NCBI GenBank assembly: GCA_964035545.1
Contig: OZ037773.1
Location: forward strand, 3,377,751 to 3,441,750
DNA from: Bugula neritina
Lineage: Eukaryota; Animalia; Bryozoa
Direction: 5' to 3'
Length of the DNA stretch: 64,000 nucleotides
Below the pieces are notes generated by a model that was not told the origin of the DNA, ran no database searches, and was given only the letters and a program-made list of their open reading frames with translations. The position numbers were made by a program, and so were the translations under genes. This document shows positions 2,121 through 54,800 of this stretch, piece after piece (position 1 is the first letter of the stretch; each line of letters begins with the position of its first letter).

Positions 2121-5100
2121 CTACCACTCGCTACTTGGGTATGGAAAACCTGGTCGATAATTCGGGTTATAAAGTTTGTGTTTTAAGATGTACTCGAGAA
2201 CAGGCTCTGGTACAGCATATTTGATACTCTCATTTCTTCTAATGGCCGTCCTAAAACAAAAGCACTTTCTTAGTTATTAGAGAATAGATGTGACTATATT
2301 AAATTGTTCTAATACATTGTGCACAAATGTCACCACGTGAGTATTAAAATAGTGGTAAAATTCCTTCATGTAAGGGGTTATTAATTACCAACCCACACTC
2401 TTTTATGAGCTGGTACTAAGACTATCTTAATTATAACAAGCTAAGAAGCAGCAGAAGAAAACTTTGTTTTGCATTGTAGGTATGTTTGAGTAGCATGCAG
2501 AGGTATTTATTCTAAAGAAATTTTCCAGTTTGACAGGTTCTTACTAACAATGCACCATGAAGCAGGATACAGTGCTTTTGCCTACAACTTAAGTCACCAG
2601 TACGGCAAAAGAACTTGAACTTGCGACTTTGAAAACATTTTCCATCTTCTCCGGCTTTGTTGAGAATGTGTCTAGTATAAAAACGCTGAGCTTTGTGTTT
2701 GACTTGGCATTCCAACACTAAACTTGATGAGACATTCAGGCCAGAACATGCATTATACCTTCTAAGAGAAAATGCCTTCAAACGTGATGCTTTACTGATG
2801 GCAGCCTCAAGTTGATTGTAAAAACAGCATCGGCTTCAAGTGTAGGTACGCAGGCACCAAGGCCAAGGACATCTCCATGTTTTGTGTAGATTAACTGATA
2901 GCATAGTCGGTTTCATAGCTGCGAAAGAGCAGAGTCAGAATTTCAAGGCCAGTACCATAAAGTCCTTCTGGTGAGTTACTAAACCAGAAATATGGTCCTT
3001 TGAACCAAGCCATTGAAAAACCAATCTTTAAACACCTGGTAACTTTTGAGTTATACACTAAAGAATATGTGGAGAGAAAATTTCTTAATAAACATGGGAG
3101 ATGAAAACTTTAAACAGTTTACCGATACTCCACCAGCACCCCAGATGTATAAGTACAGCTGTAATGCAGGCCTATGTGTTGATGGCAGTTGAAATGATTA
3201 CCACTACGTCTGCTAAAGAGTACAGAGACCACTACGTCTGCTAAGAGTACAGAGACTACTACGTCTGCTAGGAGTACAGAGACTACTACGTCTGCTAAGA
3301 GTACAGAGATCACTACGTCTGCTAAGGAGTAGAGAGATCACTACGTCTGCTAGGAGTAGAGAGATCACTACGTCTGCTAGGAGTACAGAGATCACTACGT
3401 CTGCTAGGAGTAGAGAGATCACTACGTCTGCTAGGAGTACAGAGACTGACCTGATCTTAGTAGAAGAGAAGTCATCTCCCAGCCAATCAGTGACGATGTG
3501 TATGTTATGAGAGTACCTTGAAATCATGTCACTGCTGTAGATGTCCTGGTACGGGTCGCTACCCTCCCGTACCACTACCACTAGCCCGTGATCTCGCAGG
3601 ATTTGCTCCATCTAAAAGAGTGTCAAGCAAGTTTGACTGAAGTGATTAAAACTTTCTGCGACGGTAGGAGTCATAAAACTTACTAAATCTATTACGTAGA
3701 TTCTGTTTATTGGAAAAAAAACCTTCCTAATATATTATTTAATAATAATAAAAGCAATTTTGCCTCCTCCTCCCTTTCACCACAATCTTCACCTCAGCGA
3801 CAAGAAGGTGATGATTACTGGAAAAACACAGTCATGTTCAATATACGTACTGAACAAGGCTAACCGTTGCTGAAAGCTATTTGGCTTATACCATGGCCAT
3901 CAGATTAAAACATAGGCATACTTTGCATCCCATTTGAAAGAGAAAAACTGCATTATTTGAAGATTACAAAATTAAATTCACAAAACTGTAAGAAACGGAG
4001 TATTTTTGACAATTAAATAAAGTTAACTTCGGTGATGCAAAAATTGTCACTTAAACCTGTGTTTTTTACTAATAATTCAACAAAAAATATAGAAATTGTA
4101 GAAAAATTTCTAATTATTTAAATTTATTTGTAATTTTGTATTTCCTTACTATTAGGCAAAAATATATACACAGGTATACTAGCAGCTAGAACTAGACAAA
4201 GTAAACAAAGTATGAGTATATTCACTGCGCAGTACACGTAGTCAGGGGCTCAACATCAACTAAAATACACACATGTTCCTTAGCCCAAAGATTTGGCACC
4301 GAGAAGCTACGTAGTAAGTCACTCCCGCAGACTAGCATAATCTTTGCAGATTTGTGTCTAGCAAACACATCTGTCTCTTCACTACTTTCATGATTGTTAA
4401 TGTCTGAAATATTCCACAATTAAATGAACATGGAATATAATCTGTCACATGACGCAAAACTGCTATCATAAATCAAACCATATCCATTAGTAAAAACTAT
4501 TAAAGTAAATACTCTATTTTGCTATTACTATTAAATTAGGTTCGTATTGATTTATTTTTACTAATAGTAATAGTAATAGTAGTACCGTTTGGTCGTTTTC
4601 GTTTGGGCTGTGTACTGCTATCACTTTCAACTGCTGAACTGCCATTGTAGATACACTGTGATACCGTCCCATCCTGAATTCTGTCCTTAAGTGCATCTAA
4701 GGCTACTGCTGTGGGCGGCCATTCTGACTGTTCAACTTCCCACGAGTCTGTACTGTAACAGTCTCTATATGATATGATATGTGATGCTGTAATGTACTTA
4801 TATTATAATATATAATGTTATTATTATAAATAAATATACGAGAAACATTGTTGATTTATTACTTTATTAGGCAAAGTAAATATCAGTATAATTACTTTGC
4901 CTAATAAAGTAATAAATCAACAATGTTTCTCGTATATTTATTTATAATTAAATTGCTAGCTCGTAAAGATATATATAATGTTATTATATATTATAAAATG
5001 ACATGTGATACTATGATATACGGCATTATATAATATAACATACAATACCATGATATATGACGGTGTGATACATACTGTAAATATGAAGTTGGCTAATAAA

Positions 5101-6504: not shown

Positions 6505-7299
6505 TTTACTATCTGTAACACATCCGTCCAAGTCACAAGTTTACCAACTACAAAAAGAAAATTAAGATTGAAATCTGTTCAAAGCATTTTACTGTCACCA
6601 ATGAAAACTTCAACTAGTAAGAATCACTCCTCTCACTAGCCTTATACTTAATCTTATAAGTTATGACTGAAACTTCAATTTTAAATTAATTTTGTATGCA
6701 AGTTTAAACTCTGTTAATCATTTAATAGTAATGGTAATCAGTAACTGTACTTCGTAGTGTAATGTATTTCAGATTTTGCAGAAGATCGCTTTAAAATATT
6801 TTTATTAGTATTTGTATTTTTATTATAATTATGTATTACTATTACTATTAGTATTACTATTTTATACTATTAGTATTAGTATTAGTATAAAATTAAAATA
6901 TTACTATTAGTATATTTAATTTTATTGTTTATATTAATAATAATAATATTATTATATTTAAATGTATTTATTATGATAAATATTTATAACAATTAAATTA
7001 ATCATAATCATTAATCACTATGATTCAAGTATGATTTAGATTTTACAGGATTCCATTTCATTTTCATGTGTGAATCTGAAAGTGAAACTGAATCAATCAC
7101 AATGTGAATGTCAATGTGAATCATGAATGACAATGTCCTGCGTTGAATTTCGCAGTTTATTATTCTACTTTATAGTAAAAATATTAATATCCATAATCAT
7201 ATCCGTGTACTGTACAGACACTGATAGTGGTACTGTAACTCTAACAGTAACTATACCAATAGTAATACTATTATTACTATAAAATTAAATATAATATTA

Positions 7300-7870
7300 A
7301 TATTAATGATTATCTTGTAAGCGGATATTTAACTCCGTAAACTAATCCGAGATTTCGTAGAATCCTATACAAAAATAATTATGGATACCAGAATAACAAA
7401 AAATGCTGAAATAATATTGGTTATATAATTTCAAATTTAATTAAAAATTTAAATGACAAATAAAATACTTGATACGTCATTTCAAGAGTTTTACTTGTAT
7501 ATAATTAATATTATAAGGAGGAAATAGCACTGCGATATACGAAATAGAAACACGTATAAATTTATATACTTGAAACGGCGGGATATCTTATGGAGCGCAC
7601 TTTTAACGTTTTGGGCTACTATATGTCAACAGTATGATGACATTCGAATCCGTGAATCGATGCTAATACTGAAATGCTCATGAGGTGTTCTTTCTTTGGG
7701 GTTGGCGTCAATTTTTTCATTTCTATCATATTCAGTGGGGTAACTGTGACTCGAATGTCACAATTATTAATCACTGTCAATGGGCAATCTACAGTTTCTT
7801 TTTCATATTTTTGCAAAACGTTTAATTGTTCAACTTCAAATGCATTCGTCTTAGAGTTTAGGCTTTAAGT
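7300..7870. promoter_or_regulatory. Probable bidirectional promoter core between NMNAT and PRPF39
   Basis: Lies between two divergent genes whose first coding exons are preceded by splice acceptors; locally retains CpG (tacgtca, acggcggg, gagcgc). TSSs are not directly visible. Confidence 0.5.
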
Positions 7871-9202
7871 TTAAGTCATTATCATTATCATTATGATTAT
7901 CATTATTCATTATGATTATGATTATCATTAATTATGATTATCATTATAAATATAAAATTCAATCTGAATAATATTAAACACTATACTTATAATTTTAGTG
8001 CCGTATATGAGTGTACATCAGTATGACTATTATACGTCACTTATTCTGATTCTCATATTCATATTGATATTCACAGTGATACTGATAGTGATAGTGAGTG
8101 CACTTGAACAACTCAACTACTAGTACTAGTACTACTAGAACTAGGTTATAGTAATAGTTATAATGATAATATAAATCTTATAGTTCAAGTTATACTTATA
8201 GTTAAAAGTTATACTTATACTTATAGTTATACTTATAGACTAAATTTTAATTCAATCTTTGTTTTATACTTATAGTTATAGAGTTGGGCTATTAGTAATC
8301 GTTATAGAATTGGCATTACTAGTACTAGTAGAAATACTATAATTACAATGATTAACATTATGGTTACGATAATTTAAACATTAATTAAAATATATTGCTC
8401 TGCGGTTGCTTTTACTTTTAGTTTAGGCTTTAGTCTTAGGTTTAAGTTTAGCTGAAACAGAGTGAGAATAAAATAATAATTTCTACCATTGGCATTACCA
8501 GTGTAAATACTGGTTAGTGGTTACCCATTCTTATATTGAGGCTCATAGTCATACTGATTTTAAGTATCTATATACTAATAGTATAACTCTTAGTAATAGT
8601 AATGCTAATAATGATACTCAGTAAATGTGGTAGCATTAGTATTAGTGTTACTAATATTAATAATATTAGTAAAAGCAATATAAAAACATATTGATATAGT
8701 AGTACGGGTAGTTATACTTATGGGCAGACTAAATGTAATAATGATACACTTAGGCTATTAGTATCACAGTATCAATATGACTATTAGTGAATCACTTTAT
8801 TGGTCCTAAACACTGACAGCGATTAGTGAAAGATAGACTTTGTAAGACTAAGAGTTATAATAAATTACACTCACTTAGAAGCTTAGCCTTGATTAACCAC
8901 ATTCGCTCTATGGAGTCAAAGACAATGCATTTTATTTACTAATGCATTGAATTTAGTAATTGTGGTGGTATGATTATAAATCAGTTTTATCAATATTGTT
9001 GTGAGTATTATTAACTTATTCAAATTTAGTGATACTCAGTAGATTTATATTTATTATAGCTTTGCATCTGCATTGATCGTACTTTTATAGGTTGTGAATT
9101 TAAAAGCTTTACTCATCTTACATTTTTTTATCAAATTCTAGAGATCTACAGAAGTTATCTCTATTAAAACAGTTAGACCACAAAATACTCGACGCAAGAG
9201 TC

Positions 9203-12200
9203 ATGTCTGATGAGGTTTCTGCCCAGCCTGCTAATGCTGAGGAACAATTGGATTCCTTAGCCAGTGATTCGTCAATCTCAACTACAGAGAATATCAAATC
9301 CAGTGTGACAGCTAATGGAATCAATGATGATGTGACAACCCAAGAACATATATCCACAAGTGAAACGTAAGGCTTCTAAATTACAGAATCATTGGTTCCT
9401 TGAAATCGTGCCAGAAATTAAAAGATTTAAACTCTTTTTAGCATTTTAATTCTATTTTAAATTAAAGTAATTATGTTACAGAATGGAAACGGAAGTTGCT
9501 TTGGGTGATTCAGTTCAAGCTGTGAATGAGAACGAGGCTTCAAATAGTGGTAAGATTTCACATTTCTTTCTCACTGTGCACTCTGTTCTAACCTGGCCAT
9601 TAAATTACACTGTTGTTTAATTTATGCATTTGTGTGTGATTTGTTGAATTCATTTTGCAACTAGTAGTTTGGTGCTGGTGGCATTCATCAGGCATATTTA
9701 CATTTTAAAACTATAAATATGACTGATGAGTGCTACCAGCATGAAACTTTAGTTTCATAACAAAAAAACATCAAACAAATTGCTTTATTTGTTAACCATA
9801 TATCTACTTATTTTTCACTCTTAAATATTTCAGCAATTTTTATCTGCTGTTTGATAAATGATACTTTCAATAATTTATATTATGTTGGTCATTTCATAAC
9901 CATATCTAATTGTCCATATCATTCGTTGTAATAATAATATAATAAAATATCACATAGTTGCTATTAACTTTTTAGAGATCTAGTCTGCTTCCTTCTATGT
10001 CTTATATTGTCCATTCTATTTCTATATGCTACCCATTAACAAGCCCTCTATTTCTCTGTACTATCTTCTAGCAGGTGCTCTATTTCTCTGTACTATCTAC
10101 TAGCAAGTGCTCTATTTCTCAGTACTATATAATAGCAGGTGCTCTATTTCTCTGTACTATCTACCAGCAGGTGCTCTATTTCTCTGTACTATATACCAGC
10201 AGGTGCTCTATTTCTCTGTACTATCTACTAGCAGGTGCTTTATTTCTCTGTACTATCTACTAGCAGGTGCTTTATTTCTCTGTACTATATACTAGCAGGT
10301 GCTCTATTTCTCTGTACTATCTACTAGCAGGTGCTTTATTTCTCTGTACTATCTACTAGCAGGTGCTCTATTTCTCTGTACTATCTACTAGCAGGTGCTC
10401 TATTTCTCTGTACTATCTACTAGCAGGTGAAGACGTTTCAAGCAGCACGAAGACAGGGGAAGAAGCCGAGACAGTTGCTGCTGATGGCGATACTGGTAAG
10501 CCCAGATATACAGCATATTTTCTTTCCAGTATCTCCACTTTCTGCTTCTCTTTTGTTAAACTGATTGTACCATGTTTTTGCTTTCTACAACTGCGGCAGC
10601 CTTTCGTTATTTCCCTTTTGACAATTTGCACTTTAGACATGTTAGGCGATGCCACATAGAACAGGGAAAACTTGTCGCATACAGCGAAGTAGGGCTGTTT
10701 TTTGCCGGCTATAAGCTATTAACATACTAAACAAATTTACATCGTTTTTCATGTTATTGAAAATAACGGGTGAAAAAAATCCATAATGTAATATTTATAT
10801 AACAGGGACAGTAAATTCATGAGCAAATACATTTGGTCACTCCAGTTTTGCTAGCTGGGAGAGTATTGTGTGCAGCAGGTAACTCCCGCGGCAGATTTTT
10901 ACAGCATGTGGAATTCCCCTTCATGTGGCCAAACCTTTAACTTTATCCTTTGGCTAGGCACATTACACTTGCAGTCACTCTGTGTCTGTAGAATCATCAG
11001 GCAAACCCAAGAGATCTGCTGAAGTAGAGAGGCTGTGGGCTTTGGTGGACAAGAACAGACAAGACTTTGCCTCCTGGACTCAGCTGATAATGGTGGTGGA
11101 GAAAGAGGTGGGTTCCAGTAGCTGAGTCATGGAGGGCTAAGTTAGTGGTGGATATACTGGGGGGTTAGGTTAGTGGTGGATATACTGGGGGGTTAGGTTA
11201 GTGATGGAGAACTAGACTATTGAGAATGACAAAGCTATTACCAAGTTACATACAGTTTGAATAGCAATCATCCATGTTACACTGTCGGTTACCAAATATC
11301 ATGTTATTTTTGCTAACTCATTGTTGAGCAGTTTCTACATTGTCTCATTGCAGGGTTTGTTGGAAGGCCTGAGGGAAGTTTATGACGAGTTTCTACTCTA
11401 CTACCCCTTCTGCTACGGCTACTGGAAGAAACTGGCAGACTTTGTGGCGAGTAACCAAGGCAATGAAGCAGCGTATCAGGTAACCATCTCCGGTCGCACT
11501 CAGTCGCTGGTGCGGCGCCTGTGTCCCCAGCCGCCTTCTCGACAATGTATTGAAAGTAGTGAGGCTATTGTGTGAATACCGTTGTGCGTGTACTTCTAGT
11601 TGAACTGTTCAATGCTCTCTCACCACTATTTTGTAGCCCAACTGTTATGACTCCACAAGTAGCGTAGTAAGATAGCTACTTGTGGGGGTCGGATTTGATG
11701 CGTTGGTGCGCTGTCCTCAACGCAGCCCACCACTTGTATGTAACTATGAAAGAGCTGTGAGGAACTGAGCCGACAATATTCTAAGCACCCAGCTGCTCAG
11801 CCAGCCATCAGGCTCTGCTCTACTATGTAACCGTATGAGTAAGGTGGAAATACAACAATCACAGATGCATTACTTCCTACAAATTCTTGACTAAATGCTT
11901 TTCGTTGTGAGCTCTGGGCGTGTGTCTCTCTACAGCCGGCGTCTCTTCTCTGTTATTCAGGTGTACGAAGAAGCCGTAGTCGCTGTGGGTCTCAGCATCG
12001 ACGTGTGGGCCGCCTTTCTCGAGTTGTACATCGCCACAGAGAAACCCAGCGAAGAGATCAGGGCGTGAGTATCACTTCCTATATAACACAGTGCGCTATA
12101 CAATGGTTTTAGTTTTAGCTGATGTACCAGTGATATCTCTTCCACTTCTACAACATATCAAATCTGTTTCCTCATACAGTGTTCCCTCTACATCTCACGG

Positions 12201-15200
12201 TTCCATTTCACATGATTGGACCCCCATTTTGTGGCTTATGTATGTGTGTATGTGTATGGAAAGAAAATGGCCGAATGTAACGGATCAATGAGTTAAACAT
12301 GGTATTCCACTATGTCATGAATTGAGGTTTCGGGACCCGCAGCTTAGTGAGATATAGAGGGGGCATTGTATTCTTGATCTTTCTTACTCACTTCCTGCCA
12401 GTGTAGACTATAGTTGTGTCATGGCCTCTGGATTACACACAGACCGTGACTGTCAGGGTGAAATATTCTAGAACGTCTACTCTTGCAGGTTGTTTGAGCG
12501 AGCCATCAACACGTGTGGACTAGAGTTCAAGTCTGACAGGATCTGGGACATGTACATCGACTGGGAGGTGAAGAACAACCAGCTACTGAACATCACTCAG
12601 ATATACAGACGTCTGCTCGCCATACCTACTAAAAACTACACCATACACTACGAGAAGTATGTCCTTCCACTGAGCACTACAGGATTCATGTTGACTTTTG
12701 TGACAGTGGCTGTTTGCCATTATTTGTGTTGTTCTTTTTATTTTTTCATTTTAATTATATTTAGATGCGCAATTACTGGAGCTTTCTGTTTGTAAGGCAG
12801 ATATTTAGAATGATTCTATAAGCAGCTCCTAGCGGGGGGGGGGGGGTGGTGACTGAGTGCAGTAGTTTGTGGTCCTTGAGTTTGAAGTTGGAGTTTGTTG
12901 AAACCCTAAACCCCAAACCCCAAGCTTGGAGCTGCTCATAGCACCATTCAGATATTTAGAGTAACATTTCAGCTCAAACAGAAATCTGCTACTGGATACT
13001 ATGTTGTTATTTGTTGCGTTGCAGTGCAAAGGAACACGTAGAAAAACACGAGTTGTGGGAAATTCTCTCCCCTGAAGATATGAAAGCACTTAGGGTGAGA
13101 GCCAATGCTAGCCTCACTTCCAACACAGAAGGTGAGGGGGAGGAAGAGGGCAAGGACGCCCCTCCCGGTACTGCAGGAGACGAGGTTACAACTACCGCTG
13201 TCGATACGACAGCTGAAGATGATGTAGAGAGTGATCCACGTGAGTTAGCATTGGAACACAGGCTAGGCAGTGTTGTGTAGTTATCTAATAGAAGCACAGG
13301 CTAGGCAGAGTTGTGTAGTTATCTAATAGGAACCCAGGCTAGGCAGAGTTGTCTGTCTGGCTAGCTGCTAGCTCTCACTTCCTGTCATCTATTTAAATAA
13401 GTCATGTTGAGTGAAGGTAGACTGGCTTTCTTATTCGTTTGTCTAGTTTGGAGTAGTCTTCCCCTGGCTACTCAATCTGGGTCATTTTACTTAATTTAGT
13501 ACACACTAGAAATCTCCAGTTTTTAGCTATTTTTTCCAATTTAGCTGCTAATGACCATGGCTTTTTGCCCAAAACTAGTAAAATATGAATGGACACACCT
13601 AAATAATCAAGGTTCTGCTTAATTTTGCTTGATTTCCCATGTTTTTTTCTAATTATTCAGTCACTTTTGATTTCGGAGTTATGGTTTTTTCATAACACTT
13701 TGCAATCAAAAGTAGCTGAATAATTAGGAAAAAACCTAGCAAATCAAGCAAAATTAAGAAGAACCTTGATTATTTAGGTGTATTCATTCATATTTTACTA
13801 GTTTTGGGCAAAAGCCTTTGTTTATTAGCAACTAATTTGTGAAAAATAGCTAAAAACTGGAGATTTCCAGTGTGTACTAAAATTAATAAAATGACCCATC
13901 TCTTATGCACTCTGTAATGGTGTATTTCTAACTTGCTGTGTTCACAGAGACCATGTCGGAGGTGGTGAAAAAAGCTGCCAAGGACCTCCTACTTGCTGAC
14001 TTTGAACTCCTGGCTACACACAACGAGAAGGAGGTGAAGCTGCGTTGGGCTTTCGAGGATGCCATCAAGCGTCCGTATTTTCACAGTAAACCCCTCGGTA
14101 TGTCTCTTCTTTCACAGTATACCCCTCAGTTTCAAAAGATTTTTTATAATTATTAAGTTTATAGGACGTAAAGATATGTACCCAGCAGAATGTAGGAAAC
14201 CATAAGCATCATATAAATGTACATTTCTTTTACTTAGTTTTTTCATGGTGCTATATTGGCATTAAAACATGCCAAATGGCAGACAACACTACTATCAGTC
14301 TACAATTTTTACAATGGTGTTGGAATAAGTGAAACTTATATTGAAGGAGTTTTAAATTTATTCTGTTGTATGGTATACTCGTGTAGATAGCACACAGCTG
14401 AAGAACTGGAGGCGGTACTTAGAGTTTGAGATAGCCAATGGGGGTGAAGATAGAGCCATCTTCCTGTTTGAGAGATGTATGATAGCTTGTGCCCAGTATG
14501 AGGAGTTCTGGCTGAAGGTACTTGACACACATTACTGTGTCTTAATAACATTTCAGTTTTCTCTTACTCTATACAATCACTATATGTTACAGTAATATAT
14601 TGCTCTATGTATATATAACCACAGTTCAAGTGTATATTACAGTAATATATTTTTGGTTTAGGTGTATAATACAGTGGTATATAGCATGGCAATACATGTA
14701 AAGTCTGTTAGCTGTGCTGAACAGTGTGATATTGTGTCTTAGACTACAGTCCTTGGTGTATATTATACTGTAGCATGTATATAAAGGTATATATGTATTG
14801 CCATATGCAAAGCAAGCATATATTACTGTGGTCTCTGTATGCAACACACATACATATATTACAGTACACATACCTATATTACAGTACATACGTATATTAC
14901 AATGCACATACGTATATTACAGTACACATACCTATATTACAGTACACATACCTATATTACAGTACACATACCTATATTACAGTACACATACATATATTAC
15001 AGTATACATGCGTATATTACAGTACACATGCGTATATTACAGTACACATACTTATATTACAGTACACATACATATATTACAGTACACGTACCTATATTAC
15101 AGTACATACGTATATTACAATGCACATACGTATATTACAGTACACATACCTATATTACAGTACACATACCTATATTACAGTACACATACCTATATTACAG

Positions 15201-28460: not shown

Positions 28461-28562
28461 TTTTATAGAATGAAGCCACAACCATAAGCTCATGAATACA
28501 AACCATAACCACAAATTCATATGTAGAAGGAAATTCGTTCTTGATGCGAAGTCATGGAAACT

Positions 28563-33334: not shown

Positions 33335-33388
<54 letters not shown>

Positions 33389-39600: not shown

Positions 39601-40317
39601 ATAGAGCAATGCCGATAGGTTTGCTACTGTATGTAGACATAGAGACTATTATAGAGCAATGCTGATAGGTTTGCTACTGTATGTAGACATAGAGACTATT
39701 ATAGAGCAATGCTGATAGGTTTGCTACTGTATATAGACATAGAGACTATTATAGAGCAATGCTGATAGGTTTGTTACTGTGTGTAGACATAGAGACTATT
39801 ATAGAGCAATGCTGATAGGTTTGTTACTGTGTGTAGACATAGAGACTATTATAGAGAAATGCTGATAGGTTTGCTATTGTGTGTAGACATAGAGACTATT
39901 ACCACACATGCTATTCGTTGAGTGGACTTTCTATCAGTCAGAACTTCACCGGTTCCTCTGCCACTAAGCCTCATGTCATCGGAAAGTCTGACAACCTCAT
40001 GGTTAGTGCCCAGCATATAACCTTCTATTACTAATAGATGCACTGTGATATGGTACTCATTCTGTATTAACTGTTGTGTTCCCGTATTGGCCTGCTGTGT
40101 ATGCGGGTGTGTATATCTATATATGTATATGGTCTAGCTAGGACTTAACTTTGAATACAACTTACGTTTTAATTCACCAGTCTGGATTAATATTAGAAGT
40201 TATCCTGTACTAATTTCTATGTTGTAGATTCCCGTCCACCCAGTCTACAACTTGGGTATTAAATCAGCAATTCGGGCCACTGATTATTTTCAGAAGTTGC
40301 CTTCAGTTAAGACATGA
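36622..40317 (+). CDS. FNTB: Protein farnesyltransferase subunit beta, ~10 coding exons
   Basis: CLDASRPWLCYWIVHSLELL, GGFGGGPMQLPHLAPTYAA, HEGGEIDIR, CQTYEGGFGGVPGMEAHGGYAFCG, RQMQFEGGFQGRTNKLVDSCYSFWQ, GGFIDKPDKHRDYYHTCYSLSGLS, HPVYNL. Confidence 0.97.
39597..39902 (+). repeat. Splice-acceptor minisatellite, 50-bp unit x6, overlapping the start of the FNTB exon at 39887
   Basis: Unit atagagcaatgctgataggtttgctactgtatgtag|acatagagactatt; the last copy continues ACCACACATGC. Confidence 0.95.
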
Positions 40318-41458: not shown

Positions 41459-44400
41459 CTATTGTGTGCGGATAGTCATGGTCCAATCATCAGACATATT
41501 TACAGCAGGTTTACGCACAGTTAGTATTTGCATTCCCTCTTCATATTTAAAACTTAGCTCTTTATCCACTCCTGTAAAATAGAAGGCATAAACATATGAC
41601 TGGCAAGATGAGGGGGGACAACTTCAAGTGACCTTGAACAAAATTGCATACATGTCTGAAAAAATACCTGACCGGTCTTGGCCCAGGTTTTTATTTTAGT
41701 GACATAATCATAAAGCTAATCATCCAATCAGTAATCTGTATATCAAAGTACAATGTTACTAGGAAGAGAGAAATAGGTAAGTAAATCAAGCATTGCATGA
41801 ACATACCCTTAGAGCTCAGAGTGACTTTCGTTGGTTTGCTGGAATACCCAACAATCTTCACTGACTCCAATATTGATTTAGTTCTAAATGTGGTTGAATC
41901 TATTGCACTACAAAGAAACCAACACAACATATAATTCAACAATGCAAAGGGTTAGAAAACATCTCCATTGTTGAAATAGTTTATATCATCTAAAGTCTAA
42001 ACAATCACATAGGCTCAAGGAATTTCCTGTTAAACATTGTCAAATTAACTGCTGAAAACCACAACATTGTCAACTTGACTCCTGAAAACCACAACATTTT
42101 AGATTGACAAGTGTATCATCACTAGCTAGTGAAACTTTCTAACAGAATTCAGTAACCAACCGGATAAAGCCTTTCAACAGCTGCACACCCAAGAAATGTA
42201 TTACTATGCTGTCTACTACCCTGGGAAAAGGTAAGTGAAGATTTGCACGTACCTGCTAGTAAGGACACTGTTAGTGAAAGAAAACTTTCTATAGAGGTAG
42301 TGACCTTGTCGGTATTGGAATGATTTATAATCGTCTATATATAACTGGCCCTCGGCTGCACCCTACACAATAGCAAACAGATTATTACAAGCTGTACTCT
42401 CTGAAGAGCTTGGAGTTACCCTCCCTCCAACAGTGAAACTACCTAATGATAATCAAAGTTTCACTGGCTGTAGCAAGTGTTAGTTTGCATAGCAACCTCG
42501 AGTAAAGACTATATGCTAAAAAGGTAACGTTAAACACAGGATATTGAATAAGATAGTGTATATTAGACGTAATTCATACATACTCTGCCATTTGCAATAC
42601 TCAGGATTCAAATTAGCAAGTGCTAGTAAGTATAATTGTCAATATGTATACTTGAAAAATCAAAGACATATTACGTTATTGATGGCAATGTCCATGTATG
42701 ACGCTACTTGATATAGTAAAAATAGTACTCCATTTACTGTAGAAATTTTACCCACAGATTTAACAACGCTAGAAAGGCATTTTTTAGCCCTGGAACTACG
42801 GCCTTACCTTGGAGTCTAAGGCTACAATTAAAGTATAAGGATCATCAGTCATCTGGGTGGTAGATCGCCTCACCCTGTCCTTGCGGGGTACAATATAGCC
42901 CCCTCGATAGAAGTGTGGCACACTGGCTAAGGTTACTGGCAAATAAGCCTGCAAAACAAAAAGATAGAGAATATTAGCAATACATGCTGCGGCCATTTGC
43001 TGTTTTGACCAATTGCATCTATGTGCGAAGAGAAAAATACATCCAATCAGAATCAACTAAAATATGGTCCTTCACAGAAATGGAATTAAATAGGATACAG
43101 CAGATTATAGTCTAGGAGTATTGAGCTAATCTAACAAGCAAGAAGTATATAAAATATTCCTGGCGCAAAGTGCTGACTCACCTTGCTGCCTCCTGGAATC
43201 CTCCTAAAGTCGTCAGCGGAGTACCAGACGTCGTAGCCGTCTCCGGCGAAGTTGACGTTGACACCAGTAGCACCTTCCTCCGTCACAGTTCTGACTAGTA
43301 TAGCAGGACCTGCAGTAGTCAGTATGTACACTTATACCATTAAGTAAGTCATAGTTGAAACTTAGGGCTTATACCAACTCTAAGCTTATGCTTGAAACAG
43401 GAATAGAATTGCTTTAACGCTGAGTGTCTATTCTATAGCTACTAAGCTGTACAAGTCAATGGATATACTAGAATACGCTCAAGGAATATTCATACCCAAC
43501 ATGAACTGCTCGTCCTCAGCAAATCCGTTAGGGTCTTTAGGGAACTCCACCCACATGGGGCGGGCTGGAGGTATGCCTTCCTTCTCGTTCACATAGAATA
43601 GGGTGTACCAATACGGCAATAATTGATATCTACAGAAAATAGGAAAACACTGATATCCAGAGAAAGAAAGGAACAATTAATGCAGAAACTATATGCAGAA
43701 AGCAGACAACAACTGATATCTACAGAAAATAGTCAACAGAAAGTATTCAACAGGAATTAGTGAACAGGAAGTATTCAACAGGAAGTAGTCAACAGAAAGT
43801 ATTCATCAGGAAGTAGCCAACAGAAAGCATTCAACAGGAAGTTGTCAACAGGAAGTAGTCAACAGAAAGTATTCAACAGGAAGTGGGCAGTAACTAATGT
43901 CAACAAAACATGTGGTAATATCTCAAGAACATATGAAACTTGTAACCTATTTCTATAAAAGCAACAGCTGATACTTTGAAATAAACAAAATATGACACCA
44001 TGGACAAAGTTGAAAAGCTAAAAATCAAAGCAGAATCCTATAGAGCATTAGGTATGCTATAAGGAATCTGTGTAAAGCATACGGCACCTGGTTATGATGG
44101 CATCTCTGATGATATTTCTGTTTTCCTCTGGCAATAACCAGGGTTCTCTTCTCCGTGTGTCTAAGTGAGAGTGGGCGCGATAGAATGGGGTAAAAGCGGC
44201 AGTCTACAAAGAGAGGCCAGCAACTAAGGCTATTCTACTCTACAGTTGATCTCCAGAAGACACAACAAGGCAGGATCTATAGCCTACAGTTTACCACCAC
44301 CAAGCAGAATAACCAAGTGCTGATAACTCCAGTAGCATATAACTAGTAGTATATAACTAGTAGCTTGTATATAACTAGTAGCTTGTATATAACTAGTAGC

Positions 44401-47400
44401 TTGTATATAACTATTAGTTAGTATATAACTATTAGCTAGTATATAACTATTAGCTAGTATATAACTAGTAGTCAGTAGTATAGTATATAGACAGTTACCT
44501 GGTACCAACGAGTGACCAGCTCAGCACTGGGGTTCCGGAAGAACCCGCCAACATCGGCTCCAGTGAAGGTGATACCTACAGAGTAAAGACAATTCAGCTG
44601 ACATGTCACAGTATAGAGAATCTGACTGAAATATCGTTCACAGAAAACTTGCAATATGTAAATTTCAGCAGCCAAACTCTGAAACACACACATATTAGGT
44701 TCTGGTTTTTCAAATTCAGTGACACAACACAGGAAATGTTATCTTTGGATTGTAGGCAAAATATTCTATCTCCTGCATACTTGTGGTAAAGGAACCATTT
44801 ACCTGTAACAGACTGAGAGAGAATCATAGGAATGGATATCTTGAGGTGGCTCCACTCCCCCATGTTGTCGCCTGTCCACACAGCGCCGTGTCTCTGTGAG
44901 CCGGCATAGAAAGCTCTGGACAGGACGAAGGGTCGTAGTGAACCCCCAGATCTCTGCACCAAACCCTCAGATGTGGCTTGTTGCTGTCGAAAATGACGAA
45001 ACAAGTTGAGAAAACTCATCCAAATAAAACAAACATTGACATTTGATGCAATCCAATGCTCTGTATTTGTTTCATCAGAATGGCTGTTTGCTCAAATTTT
45101 ATATGTTTTATTTCAAAATATGAGACTCAAGGAAAGAAGCTGACAGCAAGAAACACACTACACGCACCACATAGAAGCCGTAGAGGTTGTGAACATCTCT
45201 GTGCTCCCAGCCGTCCGCGTGCACCGCATCTTTATGCATCGTAATCTCCGGGCCGTTGAATACACTCGGCTCGTTCATGTCGTTCCAAGTGTAAACATCC
45301 TCGCTGGTGCCTTTGTAGTCCTCGTAGTTGAACTTAGATGCCCACCAGCTTCTCATGTCAGCTCTGGTAAAGTCAGGGTACGAGGAGGACCCTGTAATGG
45401 ACAACGACTCATTAGTAAGAACTCAAGCTAATCTAGATGACTCTTACGTGCAAGTAGTAGGAGAGAAAAAACAACCCTCGCAAAGTGCTTTCTCTAAAAA
45501 AGGATAAATTTTTAAAGTGGAGCCCCTGTACTCTATCCGCAGAGTACACACGTTTGTAAAGATAAGCAAACACCCCCCAAAGGAGCAAGAGTGGCATATG
45601 TCTGAATGTTTATGGTCCATTATAATATTTCGTAACTTATTCATCACACCTGATGGGAGAAGAGTGTTGGAGGTGATGGAGCTGTGAAAACTATTGCAGC
45701 GCTATAAATATAGGTCTTACAGCCACAGCCAATAGGAACTACCAACACATGCAGCTGCCTTTACAGCACCCGACACCACAACACCGACAGCGCGGCAGCA
45801 TAGAATGATCACCTACCGGGCCAGCACCAGCCGTCAAACTCTTTCCCGTCTCTCTTGACAAACAAGTCCCTGTCCTTCAGCTCCTTGTATATGTGGTAGT
45901 TGTCATCTCTCTTGATATGGGGGTCAACAATAGTCACCAACTTCCTGCCAGTTGACTTGAGTTTAGCCACCATGTCGTGGGGAGTAGGAAACTTGCCCCC
46001 GTCCCACGTGAAGTACCTGTTTCAACATGTCAACAGTCTGCTGATGGTATATAAGCAGAAGGTACAACTTTAAGCTTTTAACTGAATGCTGGAGGTTGCA
46101 TGTCATTAAGCACTTCTTTGCATTCAGATCAGCAGACTTACTGATTTGAACCAACATGGTGTTTTGCACGTGAATCGTAGAAAGACCAAATTGTTAAAAA
46201 TTGAAGAATTATTTTTATTTTACAGAAATTTCCTCCATTCAGCATTATGCATGCATTTCTTTTATTCACGTATTTTCAACTTCAAATTTCTTGAAGACCA
46301 TCAAATCTAGAAAGCAGTTTCATATAACAACGATTCTTGTAATACTTGAAGAGTCACAAACCGTTTCCCATCAGTGTGCTCGATGTCTAACCACACAACA
46401 TCCAGAGGAATGTCATGGAGCTCGTAGTTGTCATGGATCTGCTTCACGTCTGCCTCGTCATTGTAGTTCCACCTGCTTTGGTGGTAGCCGAGAGAGAAGA
46501 TCTACAGAAAGAGAGAAGATCTACAGGATAAGAGAAGATCTAGAGAAAAAGAACATCAATAGAAAGAGAATATATACATAGAGATGGTGTCTGCAAAGAA
46601 AACTAATGGTAAGAGTACTACAACCAAGGAGCCCTTAACGCAATAGAAATAAATACACTATCCGTAGAAAAAGCTTTTGGGAGAAACAAACTAAAGAAAT
46701 ATTATAATAAACGAACTTACGGGAGGCAAGTTGGTGGTGCCCGTCAAACTAGCGTACTGCTTGAAGAGATCAATAGGGGAAGGTCCCATCATAACGTAGA
46801 GATCGATGACACCGGATTCAGCTACCCACCTCGTATCCATCTGCAAATGAATGTAAAGGTAAAGCTAATGGCAGCAGCTGTAATAGTAACAATGATAGTA
46901 GTAGCAGCAGCAGCAGCTGTAGTAGTAGTAGTGGTAGTAGTAGTAGTAGTGTTAGTGGTAGTAGTAGTACTAGTATTAGTACTAGTAGTAGTAGTAGTAC
47001 TAGTAGCAGTATTAGGAGTGGTACACAGTACCTGAGGAACAGTGTTATCTTGAGTCACAAAGTCTACCAGTTTTCCCAGAGTAGACCTGTCTGCTTTACT
47101 AGATCTGACGTCTACCCACATCTCACTAGGATTATTCCAGAACACACCTGTAACGCGTGACATGATGTGTAAACAACAATCAACTTGTAGTATACCGTAT
47201 ATAGACATGTATCCCTGTATACGCACGCATAGACAGTGTACACTATGGGTACGTGTGTGGAATATACATATTAGTAGAAATTGGGTCAAATACTAATTCA
47301 GGGAAAAGCGATGCAAGGGAAATGGTGATTGGCTGATTGACCAATGCTCATGTGTTAATTATAAGCCCAACTTACTACACTGTAGGTACACACACACGCG

Positions 47401-50400
47401 CACGCACACACACACACTAGTATCACATAAACTAGTTAACAAGACGAGATGCATTGTGAACTAACCAATGGTGCGAGCTGCGTTGTGGGCCAACATAACT
47501 GGGACTGAGCCGTACAGCGCCATTCCATTATCTAACTCGTACTCAAACACATCCAGATTGTACAGTCTGTATGGATCACGGTCTCTGCAACACAATGCCA
47601 ACAGTGAACACACTGTACTAAGGTCAAGGTGAGATTGGTGACCTTGTGTAGAGGTTGCATAAGGAGCATAGAGTGAACACACTATATGCCAGCTGTTGTC
47701 AAGCGAGCAAAGTAATTGATAAACAGACACAGAGAGTTGTGCGCTCAACAGCGCTGAACAACAAAACACTTACACAGTGGATCGCAGAGCGAAAGAATCC
47801 CCGTGTTCTGGGATGCCATAGACATGCTCAAACCCGGTAAACGTGATGTCAACTCCAATAGAGGTGGGACCTGCAGTATACAAAATACAGCTTTCAATGA
47901 ACAAAAGTTTCTCTGTGTGAGTAACTAATAGCGAGCGAGTAACTAACAGTGAGTGAGCGTTGATTCATATAACAGTTCAAGTAAGTTTGTTATGGGGAGG
48001 TGAGGTGGAATTATAAATGCAAACCATCACCTTGAAAAGTTACAAGAATAACCTTAAGAACTTACCATTAGGCTTTGCGTCGTTGTGGGACTTGTATTTC
48101 TCCTCCCACATTGCATGCTCCTCCTGTAAACAACCAACTGTGGTTAATAAAGATACAGCAACGTGCAGACGAACGTAACACAGACACATAAAACTAGGTC
48201 ACACTCACTTCCTCTTCTGGCTTAGCCTCTTCTTCCTGCCCTGACTCTGCATCTGCTGGCGGTGGCTCCTCCCCTTCTGGTTTCTCTCCATCCTCGCTGT
48301 CGGCTGGTGGTTCAGGCTCGCTCTTGGACTCTCTGAAAGGGGAAGTAATCCAACTGAAAACTCTACTAGCTAAGCCAGAGGTAGCTTGTACAGTAGATGA
48401 AAGCATACCCCTACAACATCAGCCCTATCACCTGTTACCAACAAATACCACAAGTCAGAGTGCCAGAAACTAGTTTATCACAACGAGCTGCGAGCTATAT
48501 TGCTAAGTATAGCAGAATCTGTGAGTATTAATTAACTTTCGGAGAAAATCAGCCTTCAGCTAATTTGTACAGATCATCATTTCACCAGTTACATAGTAAA
48601 TAGTAGCTTTCCTTGTTGCTCTCGCCAATGTTGAAACAGAGGTGTCGAGCAGGACAACCAACAATCTAAATCAATCCTCCACTAACTGTAGCTGTCTACA
48701 CAAGAAGAGCAAACGACATGCTCTGTGTACAGTGAGCAGACCAGACACAACAATCTTAATGACACACAGGTCCCACACCTTGAGAGATCATGCAGAGGCA
48801 GCTGAATGCAAGCAGATTGCAGAGTAGAACTAGAGTTAACACAAGCAAAGCACCGTCACCCAATCAGGACGTGACAGTGAAATGTGAGCTCAGCATATGG
48901 TCTATTCTACTTGCCTCTGATGAAAGTACTGCGAGTTTAGTGAAATATCATGCGAAACAGGCTAATGGTACATCAAATTATATTTAATTTGCCTCAGGAA
49001 AATCACTTACTCATAATTTTTTTCACAAATATAAAATAATTTCGATTTTCGAGAAAAATACTAGAAACTGTCATCACTATAGTCATGCAACTTAAGATGT
49101 CAATAATTTAGCAAGGAAAAAAGCACCAGAAAGACAAAATGTGGAAGAAGTTTCATTACCACGCAATACTTGAACATTTCAATTATGTAATATTTAGATT
49201 TATTTTCCAATAACAATTACAGCAAGAAGCTTTTAATGGGAGCATTGCAACTCGAAAGGAAAAATTCACATAAAATGCTGTATACCAGGCAGGATCGGGT
49301 ACAGAGTAATAGAGACTAAGAAACCCCACTACCCTCCTAAATACATACAAGCAGTGAGCTGCAGGCCGCTAGAAGCTATTGTATGTCTATACAATACTCA
49401 CGGCTTCAATCGAAGATGTTCAAACTTCATGAGTCCCCGAGAGTTGAGCTGCAGCACAGTCGTATCTCCAGATAACACCTCGACTAGAAAAGGAGACGTA
49501 GCTTTCACAGTGGTCTCCGTGTTGGGCAGGGAGAGAGTGAACGCCTCGGAGCTCTGAGATGCTACTGAGAACCTGCAACAGTATCAACAGTATCAGCATC
49601 AGTGTGTGCTGCAACAATAGCGGCAGCATCAGTGTCTGCTGCTGTTACTAAGTGCACTGCTGACTCTAGCATACTTACTTTGAAATTTTAGATTGCAGCT
49701 GATGTTCCAAGACGACGTCCCCTGGGGGCACTTCATATCTTGGTTTGATAGGTGACTTCTCATTCATGTGTACCCTAACAATACCATTGCTATAGCCCGT
49801 TAGCTTCACCACAAACACTGCAACAAATAAACAGGTGAGTTAATCCTTCACATTGGCCAATAAATTGCCGAGACTGAAAAGTCACAACATAGTGTCTACA
49901 GAGAAAATGCTTCTTGAATTACATTTTAAACAGGAAATAATATTCAAATTATGAACAAACTTTATGCAAGAGAATAGAGGTAGAGTAAGTTTTACATAAA
50001 TTGTGTAAAGCTATACAGAATGCTTTAAAGAGTCTGCTAAAACTAGTCAAATGATCACACAATGAAATAGAACATTGCAAGAATTTGGAGGAAGGTCACT
50101 AGTCGTTCTCAACTTGCGACAGCTAAAATAACTATTCGGTACTCACAGATGTCATATTTGGTGTTCTTAACGTCAAACTGTGCGCTCTCAGATGATACTA
50201 CTAGACTGTCTGCCACCAGGTGGTAGTGTGGAGTTGCTGGAGCAGTATAGGCTCTCTGCCTCCTGCACAGCACACATATCATATATATGCTAATAATATA
50301 ACTCATAGCTTATAACAGTCATCAAAACTCAATGTTTCAATGAAAGTCAATTTACTAGTGCCTTAAACAGAGTGTTGATTATCTCTAAAGTAATTTCATT

Positions 50401-50536
50401 TTTTTACTCTGCAGTGAATAAAATTGTTATCTTACTTGCAGAATCCACTTTCATCACAAGTCTTGAAGTTATTTCTATCTACTGCTAGAGCAGAGTTTAT
50501 AAACAACAACACGAAGAGTACTGCACAAACTTTCAT
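41459..50536 (-). CDS. GANAB: Neutral alpha-glucosidase AB (glucosidase II alpha, GH31), multi-exon
   Basis: Signal peptide then [19 protein letters not shown]; [26 protein letters not shown]; [10 protein letters not shown]; catalytic [17 protein letters not shown]; [24 protein letters not shown]; [11 protein letters not shown]; C-terminal [21 protein letters not shown]. Confidence 0.97.
43730..43885. repeat. Degenerate ~14/28-bp tandem repeat in a GANAB intron
   Basis: Repeated agtattcaacaggaagtagtcaacagaa. Confidence 0.8.
44336..44480. repeat. 18-bp-unit minisatellite starting ~15-20 nt into a GANAB intron after the donor at ~44498
   Basis: Repeated atataactagtagcttgt / atataactattagctagt. 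Confidence 0.85.
46895..47015. repeat. (GTA)n/(GCA)n microsatellite in a GANAB intron
   Basis: Long gtagtagta run. Confidence 0.9.
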
Positions 50537-51882
50537 AGTAGTGATTTCCCACCTGCAAGTGCAACATCAACATGAACATGGTGAAAGCATTAACATATAA
50601 TTTGACATACATCTATATTTTATCAATTCAATCATTAAATGATTCAATTAAAATGATTCTATTTAATTATGACAGAAATATCAATATTATTTAAATTTTA
50701 GTAACACTTATACCAATAGCCTACTAAAACAACTTGAATATTTTATTTTTAAAGTTATTAGCAATTGTAAATCATAATGAAAATATGTCACATTCACTAT
50801 CACTATGACTATCAATTTCAGTATAACTATAATAATTATAAATTAATATTATAATATAAATAATAAAACTAAATTTAATATCAATTATGTAATGGTAATG
50901 CTAATAGTAATACTAATAGTCATAGAGATGGTGCATTATTAGTAGTAATACTAAATCTAATAGTAGTACTAATAAGTATTAGCAAATGTAACACTAATAC
51001 TAATAGTAATGGTAATAGTAATACTAATAGTTATACTAACAGTAATAGTAATACTAGTACTAGTGGTAGTAGCAGCAGCAATACTTTAACATTAACATAT
51101 AGTTATACTTATACTAGTTATAGTTATACAGTTACACATTGACAGTACGCTTACCACTACACTAACACGAATACTATTACTAATACTGCAAGTAAGAGTA
51201 AGTGTAAGTGTAGCTGTAACACTAACACTAACAGTAACTGTAACAGTAACTGTAAGTCATAAGTGCAACTGCAATTCCTGGCCACTGTGACACTGACTGG
51301 GCCCTGGGCAAGGCAGTTAGAGTTTGCAATATGAAAACTCATAAAATTAAATAGTAATTGCGATAGTCAGCCACTAATAAAGACAAAATGAGAAAATTCA
51401 AACATGCATTAGACTCGAATTTGCTATTGAAATCACTATGAGCAATGACTATAAGAATAAACAATGAATGAAATCCTTTACCATTGTCTTTCGGCCATGA
51501 TGATAGTAAATGTAGTCTTACCAAAATTTATGAATCATGAAGAGGATACATTTTTAAAAAAAGAAACGAGTATCAAAATAATAAATAAATAAATATTTGC
51601 TCAAAATATAGGCAACATTTATACAACAAAAATTATTATGCAAAAAAACTTTGTTTTATTAAAAAAATAAATGCTTTATATAAAGACTATATCTGCTGTT
51701 ATCAGCGATTCCGATAAATTATATTCTCGAAAGTTTGGTTTCCGAAATCGGCATGCCCTATGGCCTGTTAAATATTTGTCACTGTAAGACTCATTCAGAT
51801 TTACTTTTTCAAAAGCTGCCCATACAACTAATAACTATTAAAGAGTCATACGTTTTCAAAAATTAACTAATTTATTTTTTAA

Positions 51883-54800
51883 ATGTCACGCAACAAGATA
51901 GATGACAAATCTTTCGGTTACCGACACTTATGTGAAAGGGGCTGGAACGACGGTATGAAAATAAAATTCACTTTGACTTTCACTGATCACTCAAACTTTC
52001 AGTTTGGGGTTCACCCAAATTAAAATTCAATTATTTTCAGTACAGAATTAAAATATTGAAACTAAATTAAAGTTTTATAAAATTGAATAATATTATATTT
52101 ATTAATATAACCTAAACCTTAACGGGCTAACCATGATTATAGTTTATTTTATATTTAATTTTATGCCTATACTTAGTCTTATACTTATAGTTATACAGTA
52201 TAACTTATAGTTATACTATAACTATTACTATAAGTATAGCTATAAGTATAAATATAAAATGAACTATAATCATGGTTTAGGTTATATTAATGAATGTACT
52301 ATAATTCAATTTTATAATACATTAATTTAGTTATAGTATCAGTATGACCATGAGTATGTGGGCCACTGCTGAATCTCAACAGTCAACACTACACTCAATC
52401 TCATTACATTCAATAATTTGTTTTCAGTTGAGTTTCATCTGCCAGATCCTTAGAATATATTTTAGTTCATTTTTTGTAGTTATACTTTTGCTCAAAGTGA
52501 GACTGAGAGTGAGTCTTGCTTGTACTTTCTTAACAAAATAAAAAGGTAATTGTCTGGCAGCTGGTAGTTGTTTGATTCTTTTGGTTATTGTCATTGAAAT
52601 TCACTAGAATTTTAGTTACAAACGTTAATGTATAGCTGGCAGGAATAATTAATATGTTAGGAGTTATTTAGTTGATATATTAGTTATCAATTCTGCCATA
52701 TGTAATAAAATTGTGTGTCATTTGTAGGTGAAGGCCTGGGTCGAGACAATAATGGAACAGCTGATCCCATAAAAGTGAATGTATGTAACGCTCTTACCTT
52801 ATCTAGTTGGATAATTACATAAGTTTTTAAAATAATTTATGAATAAATTTATAAATAACAGTATTTCTACTTGAAATTTGTTATTTAGCTGAAACACGAC
52901 AAAGCTGGCCTTGGGCATGATATTAGTAAAACTTTCACCAACCAGTGGTGGGACCATGTGTTCAACAAAGCGGCTGCTAAGCTCTCTGTAGAGACTGGCG
53001 AGGAGGGGGTGAAGGTCACTTCTAATTCCGATATGTCTGAAAAACAAAAGGAAAAGTTGAAAAGAAAAGTGTTATATGGAAACTTTGTGAAGGTGAGTAA
53101 ATGGAGGACATGTTTTCTACTTAACTTTAAGGTTTACATCGACATGATATACATGTCATTGGATAATGCTCTGGACGCTACTATTGTAGGGGTCCACTCT
53201 AGAGTTTGGGCAGGAAACACATGAGGTACAAGAAGCACCTGAGGAGGAGTGTCCACCGTCAGCTGTTTCTGTGTATGTTTCTAATATTTTCACTCTAACT
53301 CTAGCCGTTCAACTTCAGTTTGTAGTTTCACTTTCGTTATATAACTCTGTGTGTCTGTTGTAGTTTCTATCTCTTAGTGGACTTGTTTGGCTTTCTAGAT
53401 AATCAGCTTTCGTTTCACTGTGGCATTATTTCCAGTTTCATGTTTAAGACTGTTTTACAAATACGTAAAAATATGATTAGTTTTTTGTTTTCCGGTTTTA
53501 AGTCTTCAAGTTCAACAATAAATAATTTATTATATTGTTGAAAATTTAGATAATTTGGCTTCAGTGTTGTATTTTCATTGTTTGTTACTCATTGTCTACT
53601 GCCTGTGTTTACACTATTACAGGCTAACAGATGATCAGTTGCTGTTGGCGTGTGGAGGGCGAACAGCGCATAAGTGAGTATTTATAATGTGAAGCCTACT
53701 TTGTTATAAATAATTACATTCTCGTGGCAAATCTAATATTAATTTGCATTTACTAATTTACTTGTTAAGTCATCTCTCACTGTACTGAGTTGTTGCACAC
53801 ATCTTTCAATCAATTACTGTAGAGGTGCGAGGCACGGTTTCAAGATGAATGGTAAACTAGCCAGACTGGAACAGCAAGACAGCTCAGGGTTTCTAGGAGA
53901 TGAGGAACTAGTTGTTAGGTATGAACTAGTTGTTAGGTATGAACTAGTTGTTAGGTATGAACTAGTTGTTAGGTATGAACTAGTTGTTAGGTATGAACTA
54001 GTTGTTAGGTATGAACTAGTTGTTAGGGATGAACTAGTTGTTAGGTATGAACTAGTCGTTAAGGATGAACTAGTTTCTATGTTTATATTTTCTCTTATTT
54101 TGTTGTTTAATTAAGAAGAACCTGTAACCTGAATGTAAACACAAGTTATTTGCTTTTTATTTACTAAAAAGCTTTAAAGTATGTATTGGTCACAATTAGT
54201 TTTTAATACTGATTGTTTTAATAAAAGTTTTTTGTTGAATTAAGTAAGTGAATAAATGCTTGAAGAATTGTACTACATTATCCATACTATACAATTTTTA
54301 GACATAAAACGAAAAAGTCTAAGAAAAATAGAGACGATGAGAATGTGGAGGTGAGTCATAATAAATAGTCAGGGACAATACCACGAGTTTCCAAAGAGTA
54401 CCTCCCAAGTTCTGTGATGCAAAATATTCTGCAGGCTGTAGCACTCCAGTTGAAGTATTTATTACTGCTAAGTACTGACTATTCATGTATCTGCAACTTT
54501 ACACACAATCAAGAATCTATAAAGCCACACAAATTAGAAAACTGTGGTGTGAAAATCACTAGCAATCTGGCAAAAGGTTGCTATGTCTATGTTCATAGCT
54601 TGACATGTATATTCAGTTCATAAACATTTGAGTTACCAACATATCATATCACAGAACTATAATAATGAAGTGATGCTCATTAACTGTGAACTTTTTTGAA
54701 GGATTTCTAAACCTCACTTTATATTTATATAATATAAATTTCTGTATTTTCCTATTGACGATTGTTCAACATATTTTTTATTGATTTCTGTGGCTTTAAT

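Follow-up and report, generated by a model that had tools for sequence, protein, structure and literature searches.

How can an intron be removed correctly when its own splice site, together with a few adjoining bases, has been repeated many times in tandem? This question is raised by a stretch of 64,000 nt from the bryozoan Bugula neritina (GenBank contig OZ037773.1; here C9:3377751-3441750 of a 216-Mb assembly, G000), referred to below as the window. Animal-type genes follow one another in a run across it, and several of them, among which PRPF39, FNTB and GANAB, carry minisatellites that extend over an exon-intron boundary. The explanation considered here as reasonably, though not strongly, probable is that these are ordinary minisatellites private to their locus, that is, variable-number tandem repeats (VNTRs), which derive from duplications straddling existing splice sites and are tolerated through use of the exon-proximal copy. 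The arrays concerned, as delimited by Tandem Repeats Finder (TRF), are the following.

10046-10429, plus strand: PRPF39 array 1, 32-bp unit, 12.0 copies, 94% matches
14846-15306, plus strand: PRPF39 array 2, 20-bp unit, 23.2 copies
17915-18504, plus strand: PRPF39 array 3, 22-bp unit, 26.8 copies
39597-39901, plus strand: FNTB array, 50-bp unit, 6.1 copies
46491-46569, minus strand: GANAB array, 19-bp unit, 4.3 copies, degenerate, 79% matches
53905-54075, plus strand: GPATCH4 array, 18-bp unit, 9.5 copies, in frame (ELVVRY)
3200-3446, minus strand: NMNAT array, 27-bp unit, 9.1 copies, starting 4 nt after the donor (GT at 3450-3449)

The arrays named by an initial annotation, which was made from the sequence alone, exist at the coordinates, periods and copy numbers that it reported. 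Their periods of 18-50 bp, head-to-tail order, 4-27 copies and 79-96% matches identify them as minisatellites.

The use of the repeated sites can be followed directly in PRPF39. Logan contigs of four sequencing runs were mapped on positions 9450-15449; runs X7 and X10, from two studies, behave as RNA, whereas X2 and X3 behave as DNA from a haplotype about 3% different from the window. These contigs are assembled major forms from which rare variants have been dropped. Contigs of X7 and X10 contain GT..AG joints for eight PRPF39 introns. The intron with array 1 covers 9550-10423 and ends at the TAG of the last unit, as given by the joint 9549|10424 in an X10 contig and a matching loose end in X7. 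Its acceptor reads ctactag|CAGGTGAAG, with the AG at 10422-10423, and the first six exon nt (CAGGTG) lie inside the last unit. The array ends in TAGCAG, of which the upstream TAG is used in the RNA contigs; the border annotated earlier, YAG|GTG, was therefore 3 nt off, since RNA gives TAG|CAGGTG at 10423|10424. The intron with array 2 covers 14518-15300, and the joint 14517|15301 is present in both X7 and X10 at the last AG (attacag|TACACA, AG at 15299-15300), again with six exon nt (TACACA) in the unit. In the major RNA forms of both introns, the copy used is thus the exon-proximal one. For arrays 1 and 2, the last unit together with its exon is also covered by DNA contigs from two other studies, whose depth is raised over the arrays.

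For the remaining arrays the junctions are placed by other means. Array 3 makes up 87% of the last PRPF39 intron (17827-18503), and its acceptor, tatatag|TGACAAG at 18503|18504 with one exon nt in the unit, is predicted from the GT..AG ends, from the continuity of the frame (...SATPR|S-DKTVDAKK...) and from an independent contig described below. A protein search with the last exon across this junction returned as sole match the window's own open reading frame (ORF), a blank made weak by the length limits of the tool. The FNTB intron covers 39297-39886; its acceptor, tgtgtag|ACATAGAGAC at 39886|39887, lies in the last unit, which includes 15 exon nt, and FNTB chains of the Protein Data Bank align without gaps across the junction (DKPDK|HRDYYHTCY). 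Two in-frame AGs stand here 6 nt apart. In GANAB, transcribed from the minus strand, the intron covers 46717-46502 and the exon starts at 46501 according to tblastn of homologs; the acceptor reads ctgtag|ATCTTCTCTCTC (the exon begins ATCTTC), and 11 exon nt belong to the unit.

The same arrangement is found on the donor side at a Noc2-like gene elsewhere in the genome (L004, G000:C5:211234-214552), one of a set of loci, L002-L010, that were not blindly chosen. Here, four consecutive introns are taken up almost entirely by private minisatellites, four different ones, with 0-19 nt left at the ends. Two of them repeat a donor plus 17-22 nt of coding exon. A 27-mer in 24.5 copies is formed by the last 22 nt of the exon followed by GTAAG, and a 25-mer in 5.9 copies spans the next donor. 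The exon before the 27-mer array corresponds to positions 115-157 of the Pfam Noc2 profile and the exon after it to positions 158-227; with this continuity, only the first of the 24 AG|GTAAG donor copies fits. A third array, a 29-mer in 12 copies, begins in the exon end and stops 11 nt short of the acceptor. At L007 an array of 1.85 kb ends about 4 nt from an acceptor, and one of 2.6 kb at L008 comes equally close to a donor. In a random sample of the genome (defined below), a minus-strand array of 29 bp and 20 copies (L016, 3816-4406) is flush with the acceptor and has its start 23 nt past the donor; donors are included in two small arrays. Donor and acceptor cases are therefore about equally common overall, and the emphasis that was earlier laid on acceptors reflects a feature of the window.

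Taken together, the terminal unit spans the boundary, with 1-15 exon nt in the unit at five acceptors and 22 exon nt plus GTAAG at the L004 donor. The initial description of arrays ending exactly at the exon is inexact, as the exon itself is overlapped by 1-15 nt. The view that normal mRNA comes from the exon-proximal copy alone is upheld by major-form RNA for two arrays and by the continuity of protein chain or profile for FNTB and the L004 donor array.

Two further arrays of the window are less firmly placed. In the GPATCH4-like gene, a lysine-rich exon lies downstream at 54898-55035 (acceptor cctgtag|), which places the array at an intron's 5′ end. Its unit holds two candidate donors, GTT|GTTAGG (phase 0) and AG|GTATGA, and the former appears to fit the frame of the next exon better. 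A protein search with the ORF of this array gave no matches, and length limits of the tool make the blank a weak one. In NMNAT, the exon is confirmed as far as SSTKI, equivalent to NMNAT1 residue 226, and the array may reach a candidate acceptor, ttagcag|, at 3210; the candidate last exon had no match among solved structures. The units of this array and of PRPF39 array 1 have TCTCTGTACT..CTAGCAG in common; their alignment scores 17, whereas shuffled sequences reach at most 13. They have the same orientation relative to transcription and stand on opposite strands, flanking a shared divergent promoter, and their likeness may reflect either common origin or convergence. The earlier statement that units are unrelated in sequence is accordingly valid in general, with this significant likeness as the exception.

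As regards the reality and the age of the arrays, an independent contig of 1552 nt from a Joint Genome Institute (JGI) metagenome, L031, matches window positions 17117-19087 at 91-96%. It has the same donor and the same last exon, its acceptor reads tctag|TGACAAG, and array 3 is present in 5.7 copies against 26.8 in the window. The array copies of L031 are distinguishable (86% matches), which argues against collapse, although partial collapse in its assembly is possible. Array 3 is therefore a VNTR and real DNA; an assembly artefact, which had been named among the findings that would overturn the first interpretation, does not account for it. Between 845 and 969 of L031, three of the five inner array-3 units have lost the AG (TTA, TAA and CAA variants). 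A metagenome search for FNTB contigs of the same species, over records from which near-identical ones were excluded, gave only a relative whose FNTB shares 76% amino-acid identity. Its contig L032 has the FNTB intron at the identical codon position and phase, about 860 nt long, with no array at its 3′ end or acceptor. It follows that the FNTB array is younger than its intron, and intron gain, which had been suggested as an outcome of such duplications, does not apply to FNTB, the one gene where this comparison is available. Copies within an array are 94-97% identical irrespective of the distance between them in arrays 1 and 3, FNTB and GPATCH4 (94-95% in array 1), which suggests recent growth or ongoing homogenisation.

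The arrays are private to their loci. Searched against the whole genome, array 1 finds itself at 100% and otherwise only matches of 64-76% to other private arrays. An introner or other mobile element was rejected, as dispersed near-identical copies were not found in this search. A single repeat family was likewise rejected on the unrelatedness of the units (apart from the NMNAT/array 1 pair), and the units contain local exon bases. In this respect, a recurring process instead of one repeat family, as initially proposed, is borne out.

The following course of events would account for the arrangement. A piece of 18-50 bp across an existing splice site would be duplicated in tandem, and the array would then grow by slippage or unequal exchange. 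One copy would always stay joined to the rest of the exon, namely the last at an acceptor and the first at a donor, and its use would keep the normal mRNA, the other copies becoming intronic decoys. The exon-proximal copy probably wins because it is the sole copy followed by a real exon and the next donor, as in exon definition. A branch signal and a pyrimidine signal would come with every unit. Where a decoy is now and then used, a frameshift and an early stop would result, and the mRNA would be degraded; indeed, decoy use leads to a stop within 10 codons in array 1, within 7 codons for most decoys of array 3 and within 26 codons in FNTB.

It had been supposed that such arrays conflict with the rule by which the first AG after the branch point is used. 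The rule is presumably unbroken: the unit brings a pyrimidine-rich stretch and a branch-like motif, and if branching took place in either of the final two units, the AG used would be the first usable one. Recursive splicing, also put forward, was rejected for arrays 2 and 3, FNTB and GANAB, where no GT follows the AG (the next two bases are TA, TA, AC and AT, respectively). GT after AG occurs only in array 1, at the second AG (CAG|GTG), and there a single 874-nt joint was seen in the RNA contigs and no intermediates, in contigs that cannot show rare forms. Hiding of the decoys by RNA structure was another candidate; folds of four array ends gave z from -1.4 to +2.1 and lent it no support.

Several observations weigh against tolerated, passively formed minisatellites as the whole explanation. 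Logan contigs miss minor isoforms, so that low-level use of decoys may escape them. In array 2, 20 TTACAG decoys keep the AG; one in three of them preserves the frame without a stop, and its products would evade mRNA decay. The purine content of the first 40 exon nt after the arrays is no higher than in other exons, giving no specific sign of an enhancer. The site-spanning arrays are among the largest of the window. Positional statistics point in the same direction. In the window, 11 arrays in introns with both ends fixed were tested against uniform seeding with border overlap allowed: a site is spanned by six (1.7 expected, P=0.002), and ten come to within 30 nt of the end of their intron (3.9 expected, P=6e-5). 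These P values are optimistic, because the window was picked for the feature. An unbiased sample was formed by 20 random 10-kb stretches (200 kb), in which 73 arrays were compared with shuffled placements. Exons were recognised by a classifier of codon usage and GC content trained on 4.7 kb of window exons, a crude tool that, at about the cut-off applied, accepts some 60% to two thirds of windows from exons and fewer than a tenth of those from introns. For 31/73 arrays the start of an exon-like stretch falls no more than 30 nt from an array end, against 19.5 +/- 3.9 expected (P=0.0075), a 1.6-fold excess. Crowding at intron ends and array size are both unpredicted by a passive model. By a rough estimate from the density of arrays (one in every 2-3 kb) and of exon borders (2-3 in each kb of non-coding DNA), chance straddling of a site would concern 2-8% of arrays.

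The 461 nt of array 2 are open in all three forward frames (14775-15441; mechanical ORFs of 181-200 amino acids), and every third decoy would consequently add a stop-free in-frame insert of 20 amino acids.

The initial annotation held that most large intronic arrays stand at a splice site. This is true of the six spanning arrays among the 11; the five others in modelled introns of PRPF39 and GANAB span no site, four of them beginning 15-27 nt after a donor and one being internal. They are given here, with three more in GANAB.

11130-11208, plus strand: PRPF39 intronic array, 28-bp unit, 2.8 copies, starting 22 nt after the donor (RNA 11107|11108)
13255-13352, plus strand: PRPF39 intronic array, 38-bp unit, 2.6 copies, starting 15 nt after the donor (RNA 13239|13240)
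15824 (start): PRPF39 intronic array, starting 18 nt after the donor, which it does not contain
44331-44471, minus strand: GANAB intronic array, 18-bp unit, 6.9 copies, starting 27 nt after the donor (exon end 44499, RWYQ)
43722-43884, minus strand: GANAB intronic array, 14-bp unit, 11.6 copies, internal, with the donor 190 nt and the acceptor 81 nt away
42033-42098, 47919-47957 and 46896-47023, the last a (TAG)n tract: three more GANAB arrays, away from a site as far as the gene model goes, the intron ends not being fixed

The crowding just described is what would be expected of a mutational process tied to exon-intron junctions, in which short tandem duplications are favoured at intron ends and introns grow from their splice sites. 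Such a process could start from breaks, or from stalled polymerase, at R-loops or splice-site chromatin, with repair by templated end joining. In addition to the biases of the window and of the random sample, this possibility, which is regarded as rather unlikely, draws on the L004 introns composed almost entirely of arrays, on the L007 and L008 arrays that stop so close to the site, and on the small exon share of the units (about 5-58%, mean about 25%; Irwin-Hall estimate, P about 0.016). The unbiased sample, however, shows no significant excess within 10 nt (16 against 13.7 expected), and about 3/73 arrays are flush with a site against a rough neutral expectation of 2-3. AGGT occurs in 11/73 repeat units of the sample (12.5 expected), so that arrays are generally not made from junctions, and a genome-wide construction of units from junction motifs was rejected on these counts; donor hexamers are raised (11 against 3.9), chiefly in GT-rich low-complexity arrays. 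Moreover, neither the window nor L002-L010 were blind choices, and the exon classifier is crude. To our knowledge, no junction-coupled duplication process of this kind is known. A stronger version, in which a lineage-specific break-and-repair process coupled to transcription, splicing or chromatin duplicates the junctions, introns grow outward and fill with private decoy arrays, and the spliceosome imposes a strict exon-proximal choice, is considered unlikely. As regards the suggestion that duplication is nucleated at junctions, there is a strong bias in the window and a modest one within 30 nt in the unbiased sample, and none within 10 nt or in AGGT content. Minisatellites are modestly drawn to intron ends, a tendency that falls short of showing nucleation by junctions as such.

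It is improbable that the arrays are functional, whether as repeated landing sites for splicing factors, as decoys that set expression by diverting transcripts into non-productive splicing, or as recursive stepping stones. Their homogeneity at any distance between copies would fit selection of this sort, as would the presence of three arrays in one gene for a splicing factor, PRPF39, and the retention of AG by most decoys (23/26 inner units in array 3, and the 20 decoys of array 2). On the other hand, copy number differs 5-fold between assemblies with several AGs lost in L031, the FNTB array is absent from the relative, units of different genes are unrelated, no RNA structure signal was detected, arrays 2 and 3 cannot be recursive sites, and the RNA contigs show single joints. 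Mis-assembly of long reads, or an introner-like transposon carrying splice sites, is by far the least probable source and has been largely refuted. The breaking of short-read contigs at the arrays and the 66-76% matches of array 1 elsewhere could be read in its favour, but L031 reads through array 3, DNA contigs from two other studies cover the last unit and exon, and RNA joints fall on the array edge. Furthermore, the weak matches in the genome belong to further private arrays, among which one arose from conserved Noc2 coding sequence, the units hold local exon bases, and the FNTB intron is older than its array.

Straddling duplication with exon-proximal use, which remains the preferred explanation, has partial counterparts in known systems. 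Tandem acceptors of the NAGNAG type are separated by 3-12 nt, preserve the frame and yield protein isoforms. The TAGCAG of array 1, with its upstream TAG used, and the two FNTB AGs 6 nt apart are close duplicate acceptors of this kind; the difference is that here the repeated element is a whole unit of 19-50 nt, most copies lie out of frame, and RNA contigs show the last one alone. The nearest counterpart is a VNTR in intron 7 of human F7, a 37-bp minisatellite whose first unit spans the boundary between exon 7 and intervening sequence 7 (IVS7) and whose identical pseudo-donors are silent (Borensztajn et al. 2006, PMC1557585). The authentic site within the unit and the use of the exon-proximal site are matched by the 27-mer array of L004 and probably by GPATCH4. 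F7 is a single human locus with repetition on the donor side only, whereas the present cases concern mostly acceptors in the window, reach 27 copies, occur three times in one gene and recur across the genome; and while the F7 pseudo-sites are silent, the major-form RNA contigs of arrays 1 and 2 show use of the last copy here, and the decoys may still be used at a low level.

Tandem duplication of an AGGT-containing segment has been described as a route of intron gain (Hellsten et al. 2011, PMC3265369; the potato RdRp case, PMC4974935). In both situations a further splice site arises by duplication and the original mRNA is recovered on splicing, but the model creates a new intron, whereas the FNTB intron pre-existed and duplication adds decoys only. 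Intronic VNTRs that modulate splicing are known from ABCA7 (PMC5954066) and intronic minisatellites from Caenorhabditis elegans (PMC4039745). They, too, are private, lie near splice sites and vary in copy number; their units are not copies of the splice site. In the literature, no description was found of genome-wide splice-site arrays or of acceptor-side arrays of such size, which is not proof of absence. What appears new is that within one genome splice sites of both types, acceptors and donors, are reiterated in many genes, in rows of up to 27 near-identical copies, while normal mRNA is still made. Such arrays represent one route of intron lengthening and natural constructs for the study of how the spliceosome chooses among identical neighbours and what level of decoy use is tolerated. 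If the crowding at intron ends proves mutational, tandem duplication would be connected with splice junctions in a way not yet described.

The genes of the window that enter the analysis, with the evidence for their models, are as follows.

Minus strand: NMNAT, exon confirmed against NMNAT1
Plus strand: PRPF39, joints in RNA contigs
Plus strand: FNTB, alignment to solved FNTB chains
Minus strand: GANAB, tblastn of homologs
Plus strand: GPATCH4-like gene
Within the window: a single-exon receptor gene

The repeat load of the window amounts to 38 clusters, or 9.1% of the DNA (TRF), and about 18 more arrays lie outside the modelled genes. The random 200 kb contain 90 arrays (6.1% of the sequence), and the tandem repeat share of the genome is thus 6-9%. 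An Rfam scan of the window gave no matches at gathering scores. AT-rich tracts with a 6-bp period (TATTAG, ACTATT, GTAATA) occur at 6803-8238, 35043-36189 and 50889-51256, in divergent intergenic promoter regions.

Other variation was observed in PRPF39. Ten differing letters replace the end of exon 2 in RNA contigs (10485-10496), probably an allele. An unspliced contig over 11452-11986 is present beside the spliced form 11475|11957, and an intronic deletion variant of 87-88 nt at 12247-12340 is found in both DNA and RNA contigs. Within another intron, contig depth over positions 13450-14049 is 10,000-70,000 in each of the four runs, and rearranged joints are numerous; the segment resembles a very high-copy dispersed repeat, probably a transposon.

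Finally, most full-length kinase-domain matches of the assembly lie on its small contigs (C11 and higher) and contain many in-frame TAA and TAG codons. Part of the assembly therefore belongs to an organism other than the host, ciliate-like and with reassigned stop codons.

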